Shown: piece after piece, positions 2,894-42,900 of the stretch
Layout of the letters: each line of letters starts with the position of its first letter
Numbering within the stretch: the first letter of the stretch is position 1
From: Oopsacas minuta
Taxonomy: Eukaryota > Animalia > Porifera
Direction of reading: 5' to 3'
DNA: 64,000 nucleotides
Assembly (NCBI GenBank): GCA_024704765.1
Contig: JAKMXF010000016.1
Coordinates: 1 to 64,000 of the forward strand
Position numbers and translations under genes: made by a program
The notes under the pieces: generated by a model
Told to the model about the DNA's origin: nothing
Seen by the model: only the letters and a program-made list of their open reading frames with translations
Database searches by the model: none

Positions 2894-5800
2894 CTAATTA
2901 TCAGGAATTTTCTCCAATGAATAAGTCTCGTTTTCATCAACCTTTGAAGGATTCGCATTTCTTGCCTTCTTTGAAAGATATCTCTTCACACAGAATGCTG
3001 AAAGACAAGCAGTAATGAATAACCCAATAATTATGAGTAACAGAAGGACGATAATTGCAATAAGGAACTTTTCCTGGGTAAGAAAGGCCAGAGAATCGCT
3101 CTGAAAAGCTGCTGGTGTGGATAATACTACAGGCATGAGGGAATGGTACACAGTCTCAGAATATGTCACTGTAGAATATGCAAACTGAAGATCGACACGG
3201 ATAGTATAGTTGAAGTTAAGAGTTAAGCCAGTTATGCTGAAGTACAGACTCTCAGTGGTACCAGCTAAGTAATAGACATCGTCATATCCGTAATATATTG
3301 AGAATTTCTCATCAGAGAGGGGAGTCTGTTCTGCTAACAAACCCCAGGTAACCAGGATGGAGGTGTCACTAGATGTCACAGCTGTCAGATTAGTTACAGC
3401 TTGTGAATAGGTTGCTAGAGAGAACAGAAAACAATTCAAGATTTTGTAATTTGTTATATATTAACTGAGGAAGTGATTACATTAACATTACTCACGAGAA
3501 AGAGAGAGTTGGATTTGAATAGCTAGCTTCTGTTTATTGTACCAATCTGTCACATAGAACTTGTATACTCCTACATCTGACTCATCAAAGGATAAGAAAC
3601 TAATTGAATTGTCAGGGATATGAGTGTCATCAGGTCTCTGCCACTTCCCAACAAGATTGGCTGTCATTACTACGTTCTGTGTCTCAACGATAATATAAGC
3701 TGTGTTTCCGTTAGAAGTGAGTGACTCGAATGTTTGTACTGTTCCCGTATCCACGCTTATGACAGGTGGTCCTGTGAAGTGATAGGAAATGGAATATCAT
3801 TATTAGGAATTAATTAAAATGAAAGTGACTAAATTCATATGTTTAATTCCACAGAACAAACCTTGCATAGAGATTTCAACACTCAGAATATTATCAGTAC
3901 AGGTTTGATCTAGACATTCCATTAGATAGGTGTCTGTGTATTTGAACAGATTTCCTACTTCTAATACATCTAGAGGATTCTTGAAAATAGGAAATGACTC
4001 ACTCTTCATCCAAACCATGTCAGCTGATGAGATGGAGTTGTCAGGTGTGTGACAGAATAGAAATATATCATTATCTACTCCGAGGGTGTATAGGTAGGAT
4101 TCAGATGTCTCAATGACTAAAATGAAAATATTTAAATAGAAATATACAAAACAATGAATTGACTGATGTGTAACCTTGTAAGAGAGTTGTATCCAGAACA
4201 GCTACAGTGTATGTGTTGCTGATACCATCTGGTTGTTGTGTCACTTCACAGCTGTAGTAACCTGGATTGTCTATGTCCACTGACAATACATTAGCTCCTG
4301 TTGTGGCATCAATTGTACCAGTTTTAGCAGTAGTACTACTACCAGCTAGATCTCTGTAGCTCCAGGTAACTGCTCCATTCAAACAGTAGAGAGCTGTGTT
4401 TGCAGTCAAGATAGAATTTGTTGATAATAGTCCATATGTTGTCGAATCAATCTTCTCTCCAAATTGATTCACTAAATATTATAGAGAAGGTTAGAACACG
4501 TATATGTTTTGTCAATGTATTTCAATTACAAGGTTAGAAACAATACCTGTAAGATCGATCTGAATAGCTAGTGTTTCCACATTATCCAAATCTTTGACAT
4601 AGAACTCGTACAAGCCCTGATCAGATAGTAGAAAAGTAGGGAATGTGATTGAACTAGCTGTAACCCAAGAGTAATCTGGTAGTCGCCATCTCCCGACTAG
4701 ATTTACAGATAGGACGACATTCTGTGAGAGTAGGTCAAGATAAGCTGAATTGGTGTCACCAGGGAGCAGAGGGTAGGATACCACAGATCCTGCGTTCAGT
4801 GTTATGACAGGTGGGCCTGTTCATGAATAGGATGATTACAATACTGATACACTAATGATATAACTCTAATGCACAAACCTTGAATGAGGATGTGTACATT
4901 GAATATTGGAGTATCATCCAATGCATCTAAACATTCCATTGTGTGAATGTGTCCGTCGTCAGGAATGTCTGCAATGTTTAGAGGGTTCTGCTTTCTCTCA
5001 TCTGTATCCATCTCTCTCCAACCGATCTCTCCAAAGGGAACAGAGTTGTCAGGTTTGTGACAGAATAGGAAAGCAATCATTCTGTCTGTCCTGACAGTGT
5101 ATGTTAATGATTCTGCAGCCTCAACAACTGAAGAATAGAAAAGTAGATAATTATTACATTCTCGCTGAATGGTTGATTGGATAATTGAATGTTACAACAA
5201 GTATTGAGCAGGACATGCACCCAATTATCATAGTTACCTGTATAAATAGAAGGATCGAGAAGTACAAATGTATATGTGGTGATTCTACGATACTGTATTA
5301 CATCACAGCTGTGATATCGTGATACAGCTATTGAGAATGATCTGAGTGGTGCTCTGACAGCACTTGTTTCTTCATCACCATCAAAATCCTGATATCTCCA
5401 GATTGGTGGTTTCTGTGATGTGCAGTAGACTTCCGAATCAGTAGTTATAATGGAATAATCTTCTAATATAATAGATGAAGGAGTAAGTGCTCCAAACTCG
5501 TGTACTAAAAGAGAAAGTAGACACATAATAAATACTGTAGTGAATATTTGGATTATTCGATTAATAGCAATTCCATTTTGACTATATTTTGTTACTATCC
5601 AAGAACGAAGTGTCACACCAGTTGCATTTCTAGTCACCAGTGGGCGGGGCCGGATTTACCCTGGAGTGGCCCGAAGGCTGGACCATACAAGTGGGCCGAA
5701 ACATGGTCGACATTGGTCGGTGCCCCCCAAATTTCAATTATTTTACAAACTAGAAAGTGCCATATTTTTACAGTCAGGGATTTCTGTCAATATTGGGTGG

Positions 5801-11800: not shown

Positions 11801-14800
11801 GCATTTTCCATTTTCTGTAATTATATCACATCCTTCTTTCAGCACTATTGGAACAAACTACAGATAACTGCTTGTATACGAATATGCGCCTAATTCGGAT
11901 CTTTTATCGATCTCATTCCTATTTTATGCACCTAATTCAGATTATTCATCATTTTAATCATATATATTGTATAATTGTTATCACCGATTCTCCAGGAAAT
12001 AGGAAAACGAAGATTTATGAAATTTCAATGAAACTAATTGAAAAGCAGACAATAAGACTAATAATATTTAGAGGCTTAATTCGTAGCCTTTTAAACAGTA
12101 ATAATCTTTCTATCACATTATTAACATTTTGGTGTTGGTGTAATCCTAATTGGTATTTAATCTTCTCTAATACACATTGTACGAATGTAATTCACTAATT
12201 AGTTTGAATCGTACTTAATGGTCTCTGTAACATTGTATTTTAACCAATTGTACTCTTCTATTACATAATTCGTAAGCTTAAGTACCTTGATATGTCCTGG
12301 GAAATAGTACTGCAGTATATATCTGCTCACTTCCATCATTCAGTGTTACTATACAACTGTAAGAGCCTGGATTGGTTATACTGGCCCTCAATACACTAAC
12401 TCCTCTGCTGGAACCTGTATCAGAATCTAGGTATGTGCTGATGCAATCTAGATCTGTGTATTTCCAAACAGTCTGTTGTGTGTGTATAGTATTCGTTACA
12501 CAGTAGAGAGTTGTACTGACTGTAAATACGGTATTCTCTGCCAAAGGTTGGAACAGATATGATCCAATCTCTTGTCCAAATGGATCAACTAAAGAGTAAT
12601 TATTCAGAATTTATGTCAGTTGTTCATATTCAAATCATTAATCTCTACAAAAAATAGTGGAACTCTCTATAACAGCAGCCTTTAGCTCTATACTGTTTGT
12701 TATTACCATGTTCTATTGGATTTCTAATTTCCTTACAACACAATTACATACAAATATTTACATTTTGATAATTATTACAATATGTACCTGAATATATCGC
12801 CGGTTCCAATAAAGCTACTGTGTAGATTCTTTCTATACCACAATCTTGAGTGACATCACACATGTAGAAGCCAGGGTTTGTTAAGTCTAGTGTTACAGTA
12901 CTAACTCCTTGACTATTGGTTGGGCTTGGGCCTCCAGAAGAAATGGCACCTTCGAGGTTAACATATCTCCAGGTGATGGATGGCGTGTCCGATAATATCT
13001 CTGTTCCACAGTATAGTTGGGCACTTTCAGTGAATATAGAATCGTCTGGCAGTGCTTCAATTTGACCACTAGTATACATTACACCGAATGGAGACACTAG
13101 AAATAAAGTACGAGTAATGCAATATTTGTAACAAATATTCATAATTTCAATTAATCAGTTTGTACATAATGTAATTGGAAATGAATCAATCTATATATTA
13201 TTAAATAACTATTGTTGTTTGTTTGTCAGTTGTCAAGGGAAGGATTTACTGTAGGGGTGCTTGACTCTTATATCTACGGCCCACTTAAAAACTTAGGCAT
13301 TGCCTTACGGGCCACAAATCATAGATCGTCTCTGGCTTTAGTTTCATCAATTTTGAAGCTATCCTATTTGACCTCAAATTGCATTACCAATGTATTCTAC
13401 TTGTAAATTCAGGTTATTGACTTAGATTGTAATCTTTTAAAGGGATTCTAATCATTTGATGTCTCTTTTGTAATCAGCTTGTATTCTAGCAGTATACTAT
13501 GTACTTTTCATAGTAGAATAACTTTGCAGAAAAATCTCGCCAATTCATTTTATGTTCTGCCTCCTATGCTATACTTATACTTGTGAAGCTCTAATAATTG
13601 ATAGAATTCTAAATGCAAACTAGAGTTACCAAATACTTTATTCGTACTAGGAACATTAATGCATTTGTAGAGTATCTATAAGGGGAAATTTCGCTAGTCA
13701 GAATATCCTTAGTTGTCACAAGTCAGAATCCACTTTTCTGACTTGTCGGGTGACAAAACAAGGCCCGGCAAAACTTTATATTGTTTTAATTATATACCCG
13801 TACCATTTGAAGGGGATTAGGAATTGGTTCACTACCTTATGGATCTGGGATTTTTCATTTGTACTCGTTATTAGGCTACCTAGGTGCGGGATGTGGACTT
13901 CATGGTAATTTTGTGTTTGGATGGACTTTGGTTGGACTAATTATTATTAGAAAAGTTTGCAAAATAGCGGATCGTTGGATTTTTTGTTTTTACACTTGTG
14001 ACAACAGTCGGAAATCGATTTGACTTGTGACAACCTAGAAATTCTGACTATTGAATGCGCCCCATCTATAGTTATTCTATATGGTTATAGAATAAATAAT
14101 TATTATCTGAAGATTGAAGCACGTCAATTTACTGTATATATATATATATGAATAATGAAAACAAGCGAATAGTCTTGCGGGCCACGGCTTGAGCACCCTC
14201 GATTTACGGTATGCAATTTTCAAATTGTCGCATAACTATGTATTTATCGTGTTTATCAAGGAAGTAAATAGAATTCAATAAAACTTCACTGAATATACCC
14301 AACATGCTGAATCCGATTTTGACACTTTTGGATTAATCATGTGTAAATTTATTGTTGTTTTTATGAATATATAGTAAACAAATTTCAAATTTGAGATAGA
14401 ATCATACTTTCAACGACTATGCTGGCATACTCGAGTATGCTGAGTCTGAATATGTAAACAACATCAATATCATTAAATCTCAATTGTTGTTTGTCTGTTT
14501 GTTTGTCTGATGAATACCTCAAAGAGCAATGCGCCGAGTTCATCGCAAAGCGACTAGCCAAAGACTCGTATATATATATATATAATGATTACCTGGTGAG
14601 CTACAGAAATGACACTCTTTTAGGTCACCACACGGTACATCAAACCACCTAGAATTCCCAGTTATTTCTGCGCAGTCTTCATTTCCCGATTCCTCTCTTG
14701 GTTGACCATAACCCCAGTTGGTATAGTTAACTGGACTGCCATCTTTCCAGAAAAATACATTTTCAGTGAATTGGTCACTAAACCCGATCCAGCAGTTGTC

Positions 14801-17800
14801 AGCTGATTCCTCGATCATCTTTGCCACAATCAAATCATTTTCTGTATTTGAAGTTACTGAAGCTATAGTCTCCCCATTCCTCGCACATGTTGCTTTAGCC
14901 TCATTCCAGTCTCCACCCCCACTCGTAGTTCTGTAGTTGAAACATTTCTCTCCATTATAGATACAATTACATCCTCCCGGAACTAAATGAATGAATTGTT
15001 ATATCTTTACTGAAAATTTCTTTATTGTTTACTCTTATAATATTCGATTAATTGGACCTATCACGCTATGTTTGATTATTGTAGTTAATATACCCTCGGA
15101 TAATTCTAATGATGAAGAGAGGGTTAAGTTTAAGTCGGACCAGACGGTGGTTTAAGATTTTTCAGTTCTAGAATCTCCCTCGAGCTTCGATTCAATATGA
15201 GTTGACTGTTCTCAGCTACCTGATGTACTAATCCCAGTGGTTATCGCTTATAAGAAGCAAAATATGTTCTTACAACCGGTATACATAATACAAGAGTATT
15301 TTAGAACAGTTCCCCAGAGGATGGTTTTTATATCCTATGTGTTTTATTTAGAATACCCACTGAAATAGGACAATGGCGATTACTATCAGGAAAGGCGGCG
15401 CAAACAGTCAGGCCGCATAGTCTCATATCAAATTTGACTTTAGAAATTTTAACATTTCTATGAATACACCAAATTACTCGTAAACACTTAACAAACAAAT
15501 GTGAAAATATGATTGATCATATTCTAAATCACTGAATGAGAGATTTGAAAATGTCATTATTGGTATCTACACATTCGATCACCCCTGACTAGAAGTTGAA
15601 ACGAAATCTCTAGCATCATTTTTGAAATATTACCAAAAAGTGTGAAAATAGAATTATACAGGCCAGCAAAAAATATTTTTGTTTCTGTTGCCTAAGATTT
15701 TAGATTGAATTTATACTATATTTGCTGTGCTGAGTTCGAAAATGACATGGCTTTGCTGAATTGACTTTGGTTTTAGTCCACATTTGTGTTTATATTGTTA
15801 TTTGTCATTTTCAAATGTATATTCAATGTAATCAATACTTTTATAATTATGAGTATCTAGCATATTCTAACTCTATGGCATCGTCAAGAAGAAAATGTTC
15901 TAATGATCCTAATACGTTCTGTTACATATGTGGTGAATATACGTTGAAAGATCAGAGAAGAGGTATCTCAGACTTCGTGTGAAATGCATACTTTGCTTAC
16001 TTTGAGGTGAAGCTTGAAGACAAAGACAAGCGATGGGCTCCGCATATTGTGTGTAAAACATGCAATGAATATCTAAGGCTGTGGACTAATGGCAAGAGGT
16101 AGAGCTTTAAGTTTGGCGTGCCTATGGTATAGAGAGAACAGAGGAATCATTATGATGATTGCTATTTTTGTATGGTCGATATGAAAGGATTTAATCGACA
16201 TAAGAAAGAATGTGGAGTTACCCTAATTTGGACTCTGCTAGGCGTCCTGTGCTTCACTGTGAGGAGGTTCCTCTGCCAAAATTTATTCCCTTCCGGACCT
16301 CTCAATAGATTGTGATGGAATAGATGAAGATTTGAACACAACATGTCATTGCAGTGAAAGTGAACTCGAGGTTAGCTCATCATCATCTGGTGAATTCAAT
16401 CAGGAAGAGCTCAATGATCTAATTAGGGATCTCAACTTGTCTAAAGAGCGTTCAGAAATTTTTGCATCCAAGCTCAACGAGAAGAATATTCATAGCCCTG
16501 GAACTAAGATGACATATTATCGTCATAGAGAAGAAGAATTACTTCATTACTTTAGCCAACAAGAAGGTTGGAGGCTCCAGCGAGATTGCTCTCTGATATC
16601 CCATAACAGAAAATCAAATAAGAGATGATTTTTAGATGTTCTTCAATAAACAAGTTTAGTATTCTTTGTAATATTATTACTTAAAATCAATTAATAGTTT
16701 TAACAATGATAAATGTATTTCATACGGAATAGCTGTAATGATAAAATCATACTTCCCAAATTTTCGGTTTGGCTGTTAATAGTTACATTCAAAAACTACA
16801 AATTTCAATAATTCAAATTCTACACTTGGAAGCATAAAAAGTTGAATGTCACGACTGAAACAACATGCCACTATTAATGTGAAGAAATTTATGTATAATA
16901 GGCTATGGTTCAGCTTAGGACTAATGCTATTGGCGGAATTTCTTAAGCCAAACGCCTTGGCCTAGGCTAAACCCGTTTTGCCTGAAAACGCATTTGTCCT
17001 GCAGCACATAAGTACATAGAGTCAATACTGGGTAGTGTATATGTAGCTCACTCTCAATTAAGACCTCTATACGAAAATACGCTAGCAAAACATTGCAATG
17101 GACTGTAAGAAAGTTTACACGAACAACAATTGAGATACAAACATACCAGAATATTCATTTGTGCTTGTCATTATTGCTGCATATGTTATACTTGTTCCCC
17201 CATCCTCAGTGACATCACAGCTGTAGTAACCTGGCTGAGTAGTGTACACTTGTATAGTACTAACTCCTGTACTAGCATCAGTTGTCGTTGTAGAAGTGAG
17301 ATCAGTACTGATACCAGCTAGATCTACATAACTCCACATCACTTCTGGTGTGTTCATATTCTCTGTGACACAGTAGAGAGTAGTATCTGTTATTAGGATA
17401 GCATTGTCTGCTAGTGCTGATGGTATGGAAGCAATTATTTCTCCAAATGTGTTCACTAAGGAAATATTGTAATATATGAATGCATGCTATCGAATGTGAA
17501 TCATATCTCAAGGATTTTCCAGATTTGTAAAAATCTAAAGTAATAAGTTTCTATATGAATAAGAATCAATTTTTCTGAAATATCATTGCAATGTTTAAAG
17601 AGCTATGTTTATACAATACAAAGTATATTTATCTAACTATGCTCTTACCGTGAGTACTACAGAAGTAGCACTGCAGAATGTTTGTGCATGCAAAATCATT
17701 CCACTTTGCATTTCCATAAGTGTGTACACAATCTTCATTACCATAGTTATCGGGTTCCCCAGAGGCCCAATTCCTATGTGTACTATCACTACCATCAGCC

Positions 17801-19495
17801 CAAATATATGTCCCTTCAGCATTTATGTCATTTAGTCCTATCCAACACCAAACAGTTGAATCAGTTAATGTACCATACATCAATGCATTCTCTTCTGTGG
17901 ATGTCACTGTAGCTAGGTCGTAACCACCTACAACACACTGTACTCTAGCATCTGCCCAGTTAACACCAGTGCTTGTGAAATAACTAAAACATGTCCCTTC
18001 ATTTGATATTGCATCACAACCAGTTGTTGGCACTACAGTTTACCATGAATAACCGTATTATAGGAAGACAATTTCCATATATCATTACATTTATCACGAT
18101 AGGACAACAGACAACAATTAGATACAAACATACCTGTATACTTGTTAGTATCTGCCATTATTGCTGTATATGTTCTACTTGTTCCTCCATCCTCAGTGAC
18201 ATCACAGCTGTAGTAACCTGGCTGAGTAGTGTACACTTGTATAGTACTAACTCCTGTGCTAGCATCAGTTGTCGTTGTAGAAGTGAGATCAGTACTGATA
18301 CCAGCTAGATCTACATAACTCCACATCACTTCTGGTGTGTTCATATTCTCTGTGACACAGTAGACAGTAGTATCTGTTATTAGGATAGCATTGTCTGCTA
18401 GTGCTGATGGTGCGGAAGCAATTATTTCTCCAAATGTGTTCACTAAGGAAATATTGTAATATATGATTGTATGCTATGGGAAAGTGAATCATATTTCAAG
18501 GATTGTACAGATTTGTAAGAAATCTAAAGTTATACGTTTCTATAAGAATAAGAATCTATTTTCAGAAAGATCATTGTAATGTTTCAGGAGCTATGTTTAT
18601 ACAATACAAAGTATATTTATCTAACTATACTCTTACCGTGAGTACTACAGAAATAGCACGTCAGACTGTTTGTGCAGCTAAGATCATTCCATTCTGGAGT
18701 TGCAAAAGTGTGTACACAATCTTGATTACCAAGGTTTGTGGGTTCACTAGGGAACCAATTCGTATATGTACTATTACTACCATCAGCCCAAATATATGTC
18801 CCTTCTGCATTTATGTCATTTAGTCCTATCCAACACCAAACAGTTGAATCAGTTAATGTACCATACATCAATGCATTCTCTGCTGTGGATGTCACTGTAG
18901 CTAGGTCGTAACCACCTACAACACACTGTACTCTAGCTTCTGCCCAGTTAACACCTGAGCCCCTGAAATTTCTGAAGCATGTGTTTTCGATAGAAATCGC
19001 GTTACAACCATTTGTTGGCACTACAATACAAATACATTTATGATTTATTCTTTAGCACTACATATACAACGAACACATTTTTGTCTTGAACAAAATTGTT
19101 TGTATCAATTTACTTTTGTATTATTGGATGGGAACACTTGCAGTGATTTCGCATCCCAGAGCAAAGGGTTTTCCAACATTCTCACAGTACTCTTAAACGA
19201 GAATTGTATGATTTAGGATACAGGATCCCAACTAGAACATCAGTAACAATTTAAGAGGCTAACGATGCATACTGCATAATTCACTAAATTGACACCTGTT
19301 ACACTAATGTGATGCAAAAATGGGGCGTTGGCTGCGCACTCTGCATACACTCCGCCTCCCCTTGTTAGCGTACCGTGATGTTTAAACGGCCCCTAATGAT
19401 ATATTTCTAACTACATTATACTTACCTTGTAAATATACAGGTGCTAGCTGAAGAAGCAGAATTACCAAGAATACAAATATAATATATATTTTCAT
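2894..19495 (-). CDS. Type I membrane receptor: signal peptide, (CTL-IgA)x2, CTL, IgA, IgA, CTL, (IgA-IgB-IgC)x6, FN3, TM, short tail; 28 exons, about 2747 aa
   Basis: Exons read from GT/AG sites: SP 19495-19426; CTL1 19020-18637; A 18442-18134; CTL2 18032-17649; A 17455-17147; CTL3 14982-14593; A 13096-12788; A 12588-12286; CTL4 11844-11470; A/B/C 11393-11091, 10888-10640, 10501-10232; 10175-9870, 9792-9544, 8962-8702; 8483-8181, 7903-7667, 7529-7260; 7200-6892, 6805-6557, 6450-6181; 5504-5238, 5127-4879, 4816-4547; 4471-4175, 4116-3862, 3771-3496; FN3-TM-tail 3414-2894. All internal exons are multiples of 3 and phase 1, with no in-frame stops found. CTL motifs: WIGLND, WND, C..C. Ig motifs: C..W..GYYSC. 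TM: FLIAIIVLLLLIIIGLFITACLSAFCV. Confidence 0.85.
5645..6097. mobile_element. hAT-type MITE in intron
   Basis: Degenerate TIRs cggggccggatttacc / ggtaaatatggcactg; flanks ccagtggg / gcagtggg (7/8 match, 8-bp TSD). Confidence 0.6.
8523..8644. mobile_element. hAT-type MITE (122 bp) in intron
   Basis: TIRs cagcggttcccaacct / aggttgggaatcgctg; flanks ctctaatg / ctttaatg (7/8 match). Confidence 0.75.
13690..14065. mobile_element. Non-autonomous element with subterminal inverted repeats
   Basis: agtcagaatatccttagttgtcacaagtc is inverted to gacttgtgacaacctagaaattctgact. The internal sequence recurs at about 55170-55430. Confidence 0.5.
15875..16628 (+). mobile_element. Chapaev-like (CMC) transposase N-terminal remnant in receptor intron
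   Basis: Across stops and frameshifts it reads MASSRRKCSNDPNTFCYICGEY...WAPHIVCKTCNEYL...WREQRNHYDDCYFC...FNQEELNDLIRDLNLSKERSE, the Cys/His Chapa-domain pattern as recalled. The catalytic half is missing and no TIR pair was identified. Confidence 0.6.
17125..19026 (-). repeat. Tandem duplication of an Ig exon + CTL exon unit (period 987-988 bp)
   Basis: 17147-17455 matches 18134-18442 and 17649-18032 matches 18637-19020; the intervening introns also align. Confidence 0.95.
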
Positions 19496-39963: not shown

Positions 39964-42900
39964 ATGAAATCTTTCAGTTATAAAATTGGTTTATTCCTAG
40001 CTATAATTGGCTTATTGGTTCGAATCAAATCAGGTAAGTATTTAGAAATTATCTACGAATATTAGTAATGTATTTGACTTTTAGTTAACATGAATAATCA
40101 GTTAATTATTCACATATTTGAATGTATTTGTTTCAAGCTCACATTCTAGAACTCTCATTTACATTCGATGATACTAACTTCGCTTACTTCACGCTCCCGG
40201 GAAATTTTATCAATTGGCCGGAAGCTGAAGCAAGCTGCATAAATTGGGGAGGATATCTTGCTACAATCAAGTCAGAACAAGTGGATAGCTTATTGTACTA
40301 TACTCCAGAAGATATACAGATACATTTTGGATGTTTTTTAGGTCTGAATGATATGGAGAATGAAGCTGGTACTATTGCTAGTGCATTTGTATGGGTAGAT
40401 GGTAGTAACAGTAGTTATAGAAAGTTTGGTAATACTCCTGGCACGGACATATATCCATCGGATCAGATCCAGATGACAATAATGATTGTGTTAGGTTCAG
40501 GTACAAGAGTGGGACTGTGATATCAAACGGATGAATAAATGGACCTTGTGCCCTAGGTAGAAACTGTTACTTCTGCAATAAACCTGGTGAGTTATTAATA
40601 ATGAATAATTTGTATGAATACGTTAGAATGCAAATATCTTAACTCTATATTACTGTAGTATAGTAGAGTCTCTGAATAACAGATACGTTGGAGACATCTC
40701 TTCTGTCCGCTTCATTCTGTTCCAGGAGGTTTGTCTGTTGTAGAGGGATTGCCCGTTTTGGGAGAGTCCACTGTATTAGTGAATAATAGCAATTACATAG
40801 GTGTATGAGGAAGGTCAAATGGGTATTAGCAACAAGTAGAATGTTGAATGAATTATTGAGGGACTTTATCTCCGTAACTTCATTTGAGTTAAATTAATTA
40901 ATACACGTCACTGTAAACTTTGACTAATAAATAGTCAAATTTCATTTTACAAATACCTTGTATATCACGTAGCTATACTATCGTACAGTTTTTGTGGATC
41001 AGCTGTTCTATGTTCGAGGAAAGGTCATTTTTCGGAGTAATCAAAGTCACCTTTTGGAATGAGGGTATGGGGTTTTGTATTGCAAAAAAGCTGTACTATA
41101 CTATTAGCTCAGCTATATATCAAGAATCTCTTCATTTTATATATTTTTCAGCAACACCCAGTGCATGTGATCTGATCTATAATGAATCTTGCTATCGATT
41201 ATATGAAGTGAGTGATGGAATCAACTGGTTAGATGCTCAATCTAGTTGTGCTGTATTGGGTGGTGACTTGACTAGTATTACTGAGAGAGAGAATAATTAC
41301 TTATACACAATTATCCCTGATGCAGTGAGTAATTGCTGGATAGGATTGAATGATAGAGATACCAATAATGGATCATACACATGGATTGATAATTCAACAT
41401 CTAATTTTACAAACTGGGCAGGTAGTACACCGAGTGCTGGCGATGAAGATTGTGTAGACATAACAAGATCTGGAGCTGGTAATTGGGAAACTGTGGACTG
41501 TGAAACAACAACGATAAATGCTTTTCTATGTAAAAGATCTTCAGACGTAACAACAGGTCAGTACATATTCATACTACTTCCTTGGACAATATTTATGTCA
41601 ATCATATTTAGATACCAGTTTTGGTGTACTTATCAATGAAGGTTTAGACTTTCAATCTATGAGTGGGAACAGATTCTTGTACGAATCTTTGACGTTAGCG
41701 TGTGGAGGAGACGAGGGTAATGCAATTATATGGAAATTTTCAGAAAAATTCAGATTTATCAAATAGTGAAGAGCTTACAGCCACATATAATAGCACACAA
41801 ACTGGATTCAGTTGGTTAAACATATATAATACTAGACAAGGTTATTATCAGTGTCAAATAGACGATACAAACAGTTGTACAATTGGATTGTTCAATCAAA
41901 CTACAACAAGTAAGTGATAGAATATATCATATAATCATTTACTTGCTAATGTCTCCTTTAGTTGCTATTCCAGGGACTACATACACATATACAGTAGGTA
42001 TAGACAGAGAGGATGTATTACTGCTCTGTGATCCTATGGATAGTAATTATAGCTTGAGTAGCTTGATATGGAGTATAGGAGGAGGAGACACATTGAACAA
42101 TCCTATAAATATCTTTGAGTAGAGCAGTAACTCAACTGAACAGCCTAGTAATCAATGGACTTGTGATAGTAACGGGATTGCGATCCAGTTGAATACAGTA
42201 AATATATATAGTAAGTGTATATTCCTAATACATAATCATTCTTTGGAAGCCCACAATTTGAAAATTTTTCAGTGTGTTTGTTCACTTATCTCACATTCAA
42301 ATGCTCCTATAGCTCCAATGATTACAGTATCTACATCTATATCATATCAACAACACACTACTTTATACCCTGGTGTCAATAATATTTCACTTCAGATTAG
42401 TGTAAGAAATTTCTCCATCTCAACAAATCTACAAGGCAGATGGATACTTCCAAACAACACGAATTCTTCGTCTCAAACTATATCTTATGGAACTCTTGAT
42501 TATGAATACTTTGGACTGTATCAATTCTATACCATGACTTGGGATGGAATTGAAGTGCTTGCGATTCAGGCAGATTTAATTCGAAATGGTGAGTTCGAAA
42601 ACGAAATTCTCCACCTGAGTTAACCATATGATATATTAGATGACATTAATTTTAGGTTATTTTGTGACAAGTACAGTTTCAACTTCATCGACTGCCATCC
42701 AGAATGATTCAACCATTGTACTGAAAGAAGCTACTACAATGATAGAGTGCTCAATTTCAAACTTAGGAGATAGTATACAATGGTATTATAAGGCTACGAA
42801 GGATGATATGGAAATGAACAGAAATTCATCATCAACATTCTCAATTGAAACTGGGATTAGTAGTTTGACTGTGAATTCAATGAAACCGGTTACAATAGCT

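Follow-up and report, generated by a model that had tools for sequence, protein, structure and literature searches.

The two tandem units of a C-type lectin-like (CTL) exon and an immunoglobulin-like (Ig) exon in a window of 64,000 nucleotides from the glass sponge Oopsacas minuta (contig JAKMXF010000016.1) are, on balance, probably the N-terminal cassette pair of a large type-I membrane protein, in which two tracts have been homogenised and the long loop of the lectin domain has been under diversifying selection. The unevenness of divergence along the unit is far beyond chance. The alignments make a shaping of the unit by recombination or gene conversion, that is by non-reciprocal exchange, appear well supported, and a loop replacement rate about three times the silent rate indicates diversifying selection, predicted to act on ligand specificity.

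Organization of the locus

Two units of 988 bp follow a signal-peptide exon on the minus strand, each with one CTL exon of 384 nt and one Ig-like exon of 309 nt (Table 1). The measured period of 988 nt and the exon limits found uphold the duplication described in the initial annotation of the window, and the loop strings quoted there for both CTLs are present. All cassette exons are of phase 1-1, with AG before and GT after as splice limits. The membrane-spanning stretch in the putative last exon of the gene would put the cassette pair at the N-terminal end of the protein, far from the membrane, the continuity between the cassettes and this exon being suggested by exon phase and order. When the signal peptide was used as a tblastn query, the regions upstream of the two arrays of related cassettes termed C44 and C14 yielded no counterpart, and intron b did not align with the sequence downstream of Ig2. 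A 6-nt insertion, encoding an extra Thr-Thr, is found in Ig1 and Ig2 only and is absent at all other loci of the family.

Table 1. Positions of the features in the window. Unit 1 and unit 2 are the first and second CTL-Ig cassettes of the gene.
Feature	Position	Strand	Remarks
Signal-peptide exon (MKIYIIFVFLVILLLQLAPVYLQ)	19427..19495	-	phase-1 donor GTAAGT
CTL1 exon, C-type lectin-like domain of unit 1, 384 nt, phase 1-1	18637..19020	-	Pfam Lectin_C E=7e-17; splice sites
CTL1 N-terminal segment	18938..19020	-	first-unit type; groups with C44_a, not unit 2; old and constrained (dS 0.93, dN 0.21)
CTL1 centre, framework tract 1	18758..18937	-	5/180 nt differ from the unit-2 counterpart at 17770-17949
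CTL1 long-loop, predicted Ca2+/sugar-site region (WFPSEPTNLGNQDC...PEWNDLSC...)	18656..18757	-	unit 2 differs at 24/102 nt and 15/34 aa
Intron a of unit 1	18443..18636	-	89.7% identity to unit 2; nearer C44_a/c (9/142) than unit 2 (17/142)
Ig1 exon	18134..18442	-	V-type topology in model; codons 1-90 are framework tract 2 (6/272 nt differ)
Intron b, inter-unit junction	18033..18133	-	conserved, with 11-15 differences from internal junctions in C14 and C44
CTL2 exon, C-type lectin-like domain of unit 2	17649..18032	-	Pfam Lectin_C E=1.6e-16
CTL2 long-loop region (WASGEPDNYGNEDC...AKWNDFAC...)	17668..17769	-	segment comparison
Intron a of unit 2	17456..17648	-	splice sites, unit alignment
Ig2 exon	17147..17455	-	tail of last-unit type
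Putative last exon of the gene	2897..3460	-	open frame encoding a hydrophobic segment that would span the membrane, and a short cytoplasmic tail

Domain identity

Searches, family scans and folding were each run on single exons. Both lectin exons match Pfam PF00059 (62.5 bits for CTL1 and 61.4 bits for CTL2; gathering cut-off 22.6), and the top PDB matches of the CTL exon are CTLDs, the best among solved structures being the mannose receptor family, DEC-205 and DC-SIGN/CD23 (E 1e-35 to 1e-17). Cysteines C5, C14, C32, C102, C116 and C125, the extra pair C62/C122 and the CWIGL motif constitute the framework of a long-form CTLD, in which these cysteines would be joined as disulfides. In canonical CTLDs the five calcium and sugar ligands of site 2 comprise an E/Q-P-N/D motif, a Glu approximately seven residues further on and the Asn-Asp of WND. 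The CTL2 motif, EPD...E...WND, is near-canonical, whereas that of CTL1, EPT...Q...WND, is non-canonical, two of the calcium-ligand positions being changed (to EPT and Q), and sugar binding by CTL1 may therefore be absent. Other CTLs of the family carry EPN, QPD, QPN, EPH or EPS at the ligand motif. The loops of the family may bind sugars.

The Ig exon scores below the Pfam gathering thresholds (Ig_3, 15.8 bits with a cut-off of 30; I-set, 13.9 bits with a cut-off of 23.7), and a phmmer search against the PDB matched it to MuSK Ig3 (E=6e-4). Residues C28, W40 and Y77-S-C79, corresponding to the B-F cysteine pair, the core Trp and the Y-x-C motif, do not vary across 28 cassettes. The AlphaFold model of the exon (pLDDT 85.5) contains ten strands that place it in an Ig-like β-sandwich fold; its top Foldseek and VIA matches are all Ig V-type domains (E=3e-4; a middling Z of 8.3; 88/102 residues aligned, rmsd 3.2), the V-set and I-set not being separable with confidence.

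A family of tandem cassettes

At least 37 CTL-Ig cassettes are located in tandem arrays on eight contigs of O. minuta, in a single hybrid assembly of 61 Mb whose breaks fall inside these arrays. The cassettes have 50-100-nt stretches of perfect identity in common. When the CTL is compared by blastn with distant family members, the alignment stops no later than the start of the loop, at nt 243-264; the Ig exons are still 80-86% identical. A haplotig origin of the C44 and C14 arrays was ruled out, as they have only cassettes in common with the window, and neither flanks nor downstream exon order. By sequence, open frames in ENA at 54-63% identity each represent one CTL exon of this exon type, which a prokaryote-style gene caller has extended into introns.

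Divergence along the unit

Identity between units 1 and 2 is 97.2% in the CTL centre and 97.8% over Ig residues 1-90, falls to 89.7% in intron a (17 mismatches and 3 gap columns in 195) and reaches 76.5% in the loop, confirming the intermediate position that had been assigned to the intron by eye. The CTL N-terminus is ∼74-75% identical and the last 12 Ig codons 69%. The residue counts of the initial annotation are exact for the N-terminal 21 aa (9 differences) and the Ig exons (8/102), and its figure of 18 differences in ∼39-40 residues of the binding region agrees with 15/34 in residues 88-121 plus 3 just upstream. The near-identity of the central 60 aa also stands, although at 4 aa and 5 nt in 180 as against the 2 aa and 4 nt in ∼185 given before, a small difference that reflects the choice of segment. 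At sites variable in the eight closest cassettes, compared by chi-square over six segments, the two units differ at 11/85 framework, 18/46 intron and 24/37 loop positions (chi-square 42.8, p=4e-8); frameworks against intron alone gives p=9e-4.

A plain recent tandem duplication, or an unequal crossover between two different cassettes, after which constraint on the loop was relaxed, involving neither continuing homogenisation nor positive selection, is an unlikely explanation of this pattern, although it is the rival that survives best. In this reading the loop would simply be where any C-type lectin domain is under the least constraint, and several of the results below bear on such a history, in both directions.

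Exchange between cassettes

The relationships of the units change from segment to segment. Maximum likelihood (ML) trees of the frameworks join unit 1 with unit 2 (support 100/97; AU test against the alternative, p=0.0012), whereas the loop and intron a place unit 1 with C44_a/c (support 90/93; AU p=0.046), the clades for these AU tests having been picked after the data were seen. The N-terminus of unit 1 groups with C44_a (support 98/97). Quartet site patterns likewise switch topology by segment (8:0 versus 0:5, Fisher p=8e-4), and both switches argue against a simple duplication with subsequent relaxation. The PHI test on the cassette alignment is significant (p=0.0005), as are many concordant runs, among them those shared by unit 2 and C14_b/c at the N-terminus (p=4e-4 to 2e-3). 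The strict Sawyer-type identical-run test of unit 1 against unit 2 was not significant (p=0.16), and the comparison of silent sites in the frameworks with intron differences is borderline (3/106 versus 17/192, p=0.054), two results that favour duplication and relaxation. The earlier proposal that gene conversion homogenises the scaffolds is thus backed by the incongruence seen with PHI, quartets and ML/AU but not by the run test specific to the pair; conversion, and not another route of exchange, would be the maker of the framework tracts.

The corollary that conversion spares the loops does not hold for the family in general. Cassettes C44_a and C44_c, C44_b and C44_d (the latter pair nearly so), and C14_b and C14_c are identical with their loops included, the loops having been copied along with the frameworks. 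Nor is the N-terminal segment of 21 aa hypervariable. It and the Ig tail display dS values of 0.9-1.8 and omega of ∼0.2-0.3, and are old position-specific modules under purifying selection. Two kinds of module are found: the first-unit N-terminus, and an internal-junction tail, intron b and next N-terminus that are common to C14 and C44. The last 12 codons of Ig1 are of the internal-junction type, common to C44_b/c and C14_a/b, and the N-terminus of CTL2 is nearly identical to that of C14_b/c (3/83 nt differ).

In the mechanism that we favour, unequal crossing-over and short-tract gene conversion would move pieces between cassettes, both within and between loci, a movement that the uniform 1-1 phase and the shared stretches of perfect identity make possible. 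Homogenisation between the window units would have affected two tracts: ∼190 nt that make up the CTL centre, and ∼290 nt that cover most of the Ig exon. Between these tracts, the loop and the intron would retain an older relationship, in which unit 1 is nearest cassette a/c of C44, and the ends of the units would be junction modules that are old and specific to position. Against this mosaic background the loop, with its EPN-type and WND calcium/sugar-site motifs, would gain replacements by point substitution.

Selection on the loop

Between the two units, 21.3 of the 24 changes in the loop are nonsynonymous (89%) and 2.7 synonymous, and loop pN exceeds intron divergence (0.26 versus 0.089, p=4e-4), so the divergence of the loop is neither mostly synonymous nor equal to the intron rate. 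Against C44_a, the loop of unit 1 has a pN 3.7 times that of the flanking intron (0.21 versus 0.056, p=2e-4), an excess that argues against relaxation, which cannot pass the neutral rate. The GY94 omega estimated by ML in IQ-TREE is 3.06 in the loop (LRT p=0.025, perhaps slightly optimistic, the null kappa lying at the grid edge), compared with 0.96 in the CTL centre, 0.31 in the Ig exon and 0.32 at the N-terminus. The NG86 Z-test on the loop gives an omega of 3.9 (p=6e-4) for the four window and C44 types and 2.2 (p=0.02) with C14 added, from a small sample of 34 codons and ∼20 synonymous sites. These values, and the omega of 2.37 (p=0.076) for the loop in the independent clade C343-S, are in line with the diversifying selection on the binding loop that the initial annotation had put forward and speak against relaxed constraint. 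The relaxed-constraint history draws in turn on the loop omega of 0.68 in the C188 clade, on a test of nonsynonymous against synonymous change inside the loop that is not significant for the window pair alone (p=0.25), and on unit 2, which has equal rates of divergence in its loop and its intron (p=0.17). The omega of ∼1 in the CTL centre points the same way, as the entire CTL of this clade may be only weakly constrained. Nine near-identical copies on C343 carry one and the same loop, which likewise counts against diversification. Weighing both sides we retain diversifying selection on the loop; the Ig-like domain and the N-terminus are, by their omega values, under purifying selection.

That the loops were instead brought in as short conversion tracts from diverged relatives or pseudo-cassettes in the family, as happens with chicken pseudo-V genes, is quite improbable. 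Mosaicism is pervasive in the family, many loop codons differ between the units at two or three bases, and pseudo-cassettes are present on C343, all of which would suit such swapping. However, a DNA search of the whole 61-Mb assembly revealed no donor, the nearest loops, 84% identical for unit 1 and 86% for unit 2, being those of the C44_a/c cassettes. The silent sites of the loop have hardly changed, synonymous divergence from C44 being ∼0.05, whereas paralogues distant enough to provide residues so different would have a dS of 0.5-2, and the single residue pair in common with C14 (NL) has different Leu codons. The segment swapping mooted earlier is not borne out by these data. The remaining possibility, that bubble collapse or short-read polishing over ∼1-kb repeats made the frameworks look too alike, has very little to commend it: the assembly is a Pilon-polished PacBio and Illumina hybrid (PMC10280926) and scaffolds break in the family (C14 ends in the array, and the N-joint of C111 lies inside a CTL exon), but the frameworks do differ (at 5 and 6 sites, longest perfect run 106 nt), the equally exposed intron between them is 10% diverged, every cassette retains its reading frames and splice sites, a like mosaic is seen independently at three loci, and framework identity has no bearing on the dN/dS result.

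Comparison with known systems

In the MHC, the KIR/Ly49 NK receptors and the snail FREPs, conversion or unequal crossover homogenises or shuffles sequence and dN exceeds dS at ligand-contact residues. PMC12674619 is a case study of the MHC. These families differ from that of O. minuta in domain architecture and phylum, and in O. minuta conversion also copies whole loops. Gene conversion with diversifying selection is an already familiar evolutionary pattern, of which this is an example from a new lineage, and what gives the case its value is therefore its lineage and its candidate function.

Closer in domain content are the snail families that combine IgSF and C-type lectin domains (CREPs, VIgL group), discussed in PMC10075465 and PMC12074976 as diversified immune recognition molecules. 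The Biomphalaria CREPs and VIgL, relatives of the FREPs, are like the O. minuta cassettes a multigene combination of IgSF and C-type lectin domains in an invertebrate. The likeness is at the domain level: CREPs are small secreted proteins with one or more IgSF domains N-terminal to one CTLD, whereas the O. minuta units are alternating repeated exon cassettes at the predicted tip of a very long membrane protein. Crayfish PcLec3, for which an opsonic role was shown, has an Ig-like domain and a CTLD in tandem (PMC4944128), but in 252 aa it holds one copy of each and, in contrast to the O. minuta arrays, neither forms a cassette array nor gives evidence of concerted evolution. Vertebrate multi-CTLD receptors share the long-form CTLD with WIGL and WND, again a likeness at the domain-family level only, and are without interleaved Ig domains.

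Among sponges, the Ca2+-dependent C-type lectin of Aphrocallistes vastus is a putative aggregation factor (AF) implicated in cell reaggregation (Gundacker et al. 2001, as cited in PMC5400394), and PMC5400394 presents it as the sole recognition or adhesion lectin described for hexactinellids. It is small with a single CTLD, unlike the CTL-Ig cassettes, and is likened to them here by description. Demosponge AFs form a clustered, variable family proposed for self/non-self recognition, and AF genes are absent from every hexactinellid surveyed (PMC5400394). Built of Calx-beta and Wreath domains, AFs are unrelated in sequence to the CTL-Ig family.

Candidate function

Glass sponges tell self from non-self without the AF genes of demosponges, and their recognition genes are not known (PMC5400394). 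The large tandem family, the predicted membrane anchor, the alternation of a conserved Ig-like scaffold with lectin domains and the replacement excess in the loop make the cassettes concrete candidates for such genes. The selective agent may have been non-self, either microbes or conspecific tissue, and the architecture and evolutionary pattern suggest that the proteins may have an immune role; allorecognition and symbiont or food recognition would fit equally well as the pathogen pressure to which the pattern was first ascribed. It is a rather improbable proposition that the family is the missing self/non-self or microbe-recognition repertoire of glass sponges, an independently invented variable/constant system providing individual-specific receptor sets. 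Were it true, unequal recombination would reshuffle the cassettes, whose phase 1-1 exons might also be combined by exon skipping, and constant Ig scaffolds would present variable lectin loops in an early-branching class that lacks aggregation factors. CTL1 and CTL2, 97% identical outside the loop and ∼55% inside it, are near-isogenic domains suited to tests of loop specificity.

Organization and domain identity of the cassettes

The two tandem units, each comprising a C-type lectin (CTL) exon and an Ig-like exon, are spaced at 988 nt. CTL1-Ig1-CTL2-Ig2 probably forms the membrane-distal end of a type-I membrane protein, because more CTL and Ig-like exons lie 3' of Ig2 on the minus strand and the last open frame supplies a hydrophobic membrane span with a short tail; continuity of the exon chain to this frame was judged by exon phase and order only. 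The 2-kb gap that follows Ig2 holds a repeat which, like a second sequence in the window, probably represents a small mobile or satellite element.

Coordinates of features (window positions unless a contig is named; C44, C14, C101, C111 and C343 are other contigs of the assembly)
Feature	Position	Strand	Remarks
Signal-peptide exon	19495-19427	minus	MKIYIIFVFLVILLLQLAPVYLQ, donor GTAAGT
CTL1 exon	19020-18637	minus	AG/GT boundaries, phase 1 at both ends
Ig1 exon	18442-18134	minus	AG/GT boundaries, phase 1 at both ends
CTL2 exon	18032-17649	minus	AG/GT boundaries, phase 1 at both ends
Ig2 exon	17455-17147	minus	AG/GT boundaries, phase 1 at both ends
6-nt insertion	18276-18281 and 17289-17294 (approximate)	minus	common to Ig1 and Ig2
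Repeat, ~150 nt	15497-15656		tandem copies at C44:616759-617184
Second element	14337-14569		recurs within introns of C14 and C101 arrays
Last open frame	3460-2897	minus	membrane span, short tail
Distant lectin gene	40167-41534	plus	two C-type lectin exons
Ig exons with shared stop	C343, about 610240 and 618330		
Ig exon with insertion	C343:353159		
Ig-like exon pair	C44:604618-604917 and 609941-610240		3' of C44 array
Truncated CTL exon	C111:1923335-1923526		

CTL1 and CTL2 match Pfam Lectin_C far over threshold (E about 1e-16), and the nearest solved structures are mannose-receptor-family, DC-SIGN and CD23 domains. The lectin domain contains eight cysteines, the six of the long form plus C62, which lies in CWIGL, and C122; this additional pair is kept through most of the cassette family. 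The putative calcium/sugar-site motifs are EPT...Q...WND in CTL1 and EPD...E...WND in CTL2, with EPN, QPD, QPN, EPS and EPH forms elsewhere in the family, and the variable loop residues sit around and within them. Despite profile scores under the Pfam thresholds for Ig families, the evidence points to an Ig-like domain in the second exon type: a Cys...Trp...Tyr-x-Cys pattern is invariant in 28 cassettes, MuSK Ig3 is a weak match (E=6e-4), and the predicted fold is a ten-strand sandwich (pLDDT 85.5) for which every top structural neighbour is an Ig V-type domain (Foldseek, E=3e-4; VIA, 88/102 residues at rmsd 3.2, Z 8.3).

A large cassette family in the genome

The assembly searched comprises 61,460,524 bases in 365 contigs; the genome was published as 365 scaffolds of about 61 Mb with 36% G+C, in a paper whose main text nowhere uses the word lectin (PMC10280926). 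At least 150 CTL-exon matches were found in this 61-Mb, ~16,400-gene genome, a very large expansion of C-type lectin domains. The subfamily hallmark is an exon of the type VP(T/S)xGC...CYFC(S/G)xx, ending at a gt boundary and followed by a conserved Ig-like exon. The extracted set of 37 CTL and 37 Ig exons came from the window contig (C16), C44, C14, C101, C343, C188, C6 and C88, with C343 holding four arrays of up to seven units. Open frames in ENA from other assemblies, 54-63% identical to CTL2, are of the same exon type.

Family-wide, conservation is far higher in the Ig exon than in the CTL exon. Between the window and C343 the Ig exons share 70-76% aa identity (about 81-86% nt) and the CTL exons 46-59% aa, and CTL-exon DNA matches to farther members do not extend into the loop, stopping at nt 243-264. 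The Ig exon resembles the CTL framework in synonymous divergence (about 0.4-0.6), and the conservation of the Ig exon is therefore attributable to purifying selection, not extra homogenization. The arrays include pseudo-cassettes, as two C343 Ig exons carry the same in-frame stop, between QPG and YSC, and two stops lie in an insertion in a third. Two Ig-like exons 3' of the C44 array, with identical scores and 5.3 kb apart, suggest a further recent tandem duplication in that gene.

Mosaic structure and exchange between cassettes

Similarity between units 1 and 2 extends from the CTL acceptor to ~30 nt past the Ig exon and is strongly uneven (p=4e-8, conditioned on sites varying among the eight closest cassettes), with longest perfect runs of 106, 75 and 71 nt. 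Recounting bore out the differences given in the initial annotation for the N-terminus (9/21 residues), the Ig exons (8/102) and the binding region (18 of about 40); the central 60 aa are nearly identical as described, but differ at 4 residues and 5/180 nt, not 2 residues and 4 nt. A 6-nt insertion, encoding an extra Thr-Thr (TSTTTTDAS), occurs in both window Ig exons and in none of the other cassettes examined.

Unit 1 versus unit 2 by segment, with informative sites in the quartet W_u1 (u1), W_u2 (u2), C44_a and C14_b (letters denote cassettes within an array; dS and dN by Nei-Gojobori)
Segment	Identity	dS	dN	Quartet sites
N-terminus	74%	0.93	0.21	8 for (u1,C44_a)
CTL centre	97.2%	0.025	0.029	3 for (u1,u2)
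Loop (102 nt)	76.5%	0.148	0.319	2:1 for (u1,C44_a)
Intron a (CTL to Ig)	89.7%			3 for (u1,C44_a)
Ig codons 1-90	97.8%	0.032	0.020	Ig, 5 for (u1,u2)
Ig tail	69% (last 12 codons)	1.8	0.25	with intron b (between units), 9 for (u1,C14_b)

The nearest relatives of the window units are four C44 and three C14 cassettes; these are paralogous arrays, and not haplotigs of the window, because their flanks and downstream exons differ. Different segments of the units have different affinities. The Ig exon groups by locus, with 6 differences within the window pair and none among C44_a, b and c, against 17 between the window and C44 and 41-46 between the window and C14. In the CTL centre both window units, C44_a and C44_c are of one type (3-11 differences), and C44_b/d and C14_b/c of others. 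The CTL1 N-terminus is of the first-unit type, like C44_a, and that of CTL2 is nearly identical to C14_b/c (3/83 differences). The Ig tail of unit 1 and intron b form an internal-junction module common to C44_b/c and C14_a/b, while the Ig tail and following sequence of each last unit are different.

Exchange between cassettes, as the initial annotation proposed, is well supported as a force shaping the unit. The PHI test was significant (p=0.0005), numerous concordant runs among cassettes reached significance, and quartet sites differed between the frameworks (CTL centre plus Ig codons 1-90) and loop plus intron (p=8e-4). Maximum-likelihood (ML) topologies switched along the unit: with groups named after distances had been seen, the frameworks united the window units (support 100/97; AU test rejecting unit 1 with C44_a/c, p=0.0012), loop plus intron a placed unit 1 with C44_a/c (90/93; the window pair weakly rejected, p=0.046), and the N-terminus placed it with C44_a (98/97). 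A strict identical-run test on the window pair alone was not significant (p=0.16).

Probable selection on the putative sugar-binding loop

Loop divergence in the window pair is not mostly synonymous, 21.3/24 changes being nonsynonymous, and it exceeds the intron rate. Loop pN was 0.26, whereas the adjacent intron gave 0.089 (p=4e-4), or 0.093 when the loop's own silent sites were added to the intron (p=5e-4). The excess was also evident between unit 1 and C44_a, its closest loop/intron relative (0.21 versus 0.056, p=2e-4), but was not significant between unit 2 and C44_a (p=0.17). A codon Z-test on the four distinct window/C44 loop types gave dN 0.253 and dS 0.065 (Z 3.2, p=6e-4), and with C14_b added loop omega was 2.2 (p=0.02). 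ML under GY94+F1X4 gave omega 3.06 for the loop (likelihood-ratio test against 1, p=0.025), 0.96 for the centre, 0.31 for Ig (p=7e-6) and 0.32 for the N-terminus (p=0.002). An independent clade on C343 had a loop omega of 2.37 (p=0.076). Elsewhere in the family loops are relaxed only, with omega 0.68 in C188 and one shared loop in nine near-identical C343 copies. Diversifying selection on the loop is thus moderately supported, and on few sites. The dS and dN values of the N-terminus and Ig tail show that these segments are old and constrained, and therefore not hypervariable.

Variation in the loop could instead have arrived by segment swapping, as had been suggested. When each 102-nt loop was searched against the whole assembly, identity peaked at 84% and 86%, in both cases with loops of C44_a/c, and loop silent sites have scarcely changed relative to C44. 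These sequence comparisons make import from a diverged donor unlikely and favour substitution in place. Nor was there any sign of a mechanism sparing loops from conversion: conversion or duplication elsewhere in the family takes loops along (C44_a=C44_c, C44_b~C44_d, C14_b=C14_c). Collapse in the polished hybrid assembly, whose scaffolds do break within the family (C14 ends inside a cassette array, and on C111 a C14_a-like CTL exon gives way after its initial 190 nt to a single N, a scaffold joint, and then to unrelated sequence), would hardly produce the exon-versus-intron contrast, the intact frames or the dN/dS result. Both principal mechanisms of the original interpretation hold up, exchange between cassettes with good and selection on the loop with moderate support; loop swapping is unlikely, and the divergent N-terminus is constrained.

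The joining of Ig-like and CTL domains resembles the known Ig-plus-CTLD lectins, snail CREPs and crayfish PcLec3, and the cassettes repeat the already known pattern of families subject to conversion plus selection. An immune role may be envisaged. Glass sponges lack the aggregation factors of demosponges, and a single C-type lectin is implicated in their aggregation (PMC5400394); the CTL-Ig family provides a concrete candidate for a recognition family in these animals. The window also contains a second, more distant gene, on the plus strand, whose C-type lectin exons are 36-41% identical to CTL1/2.
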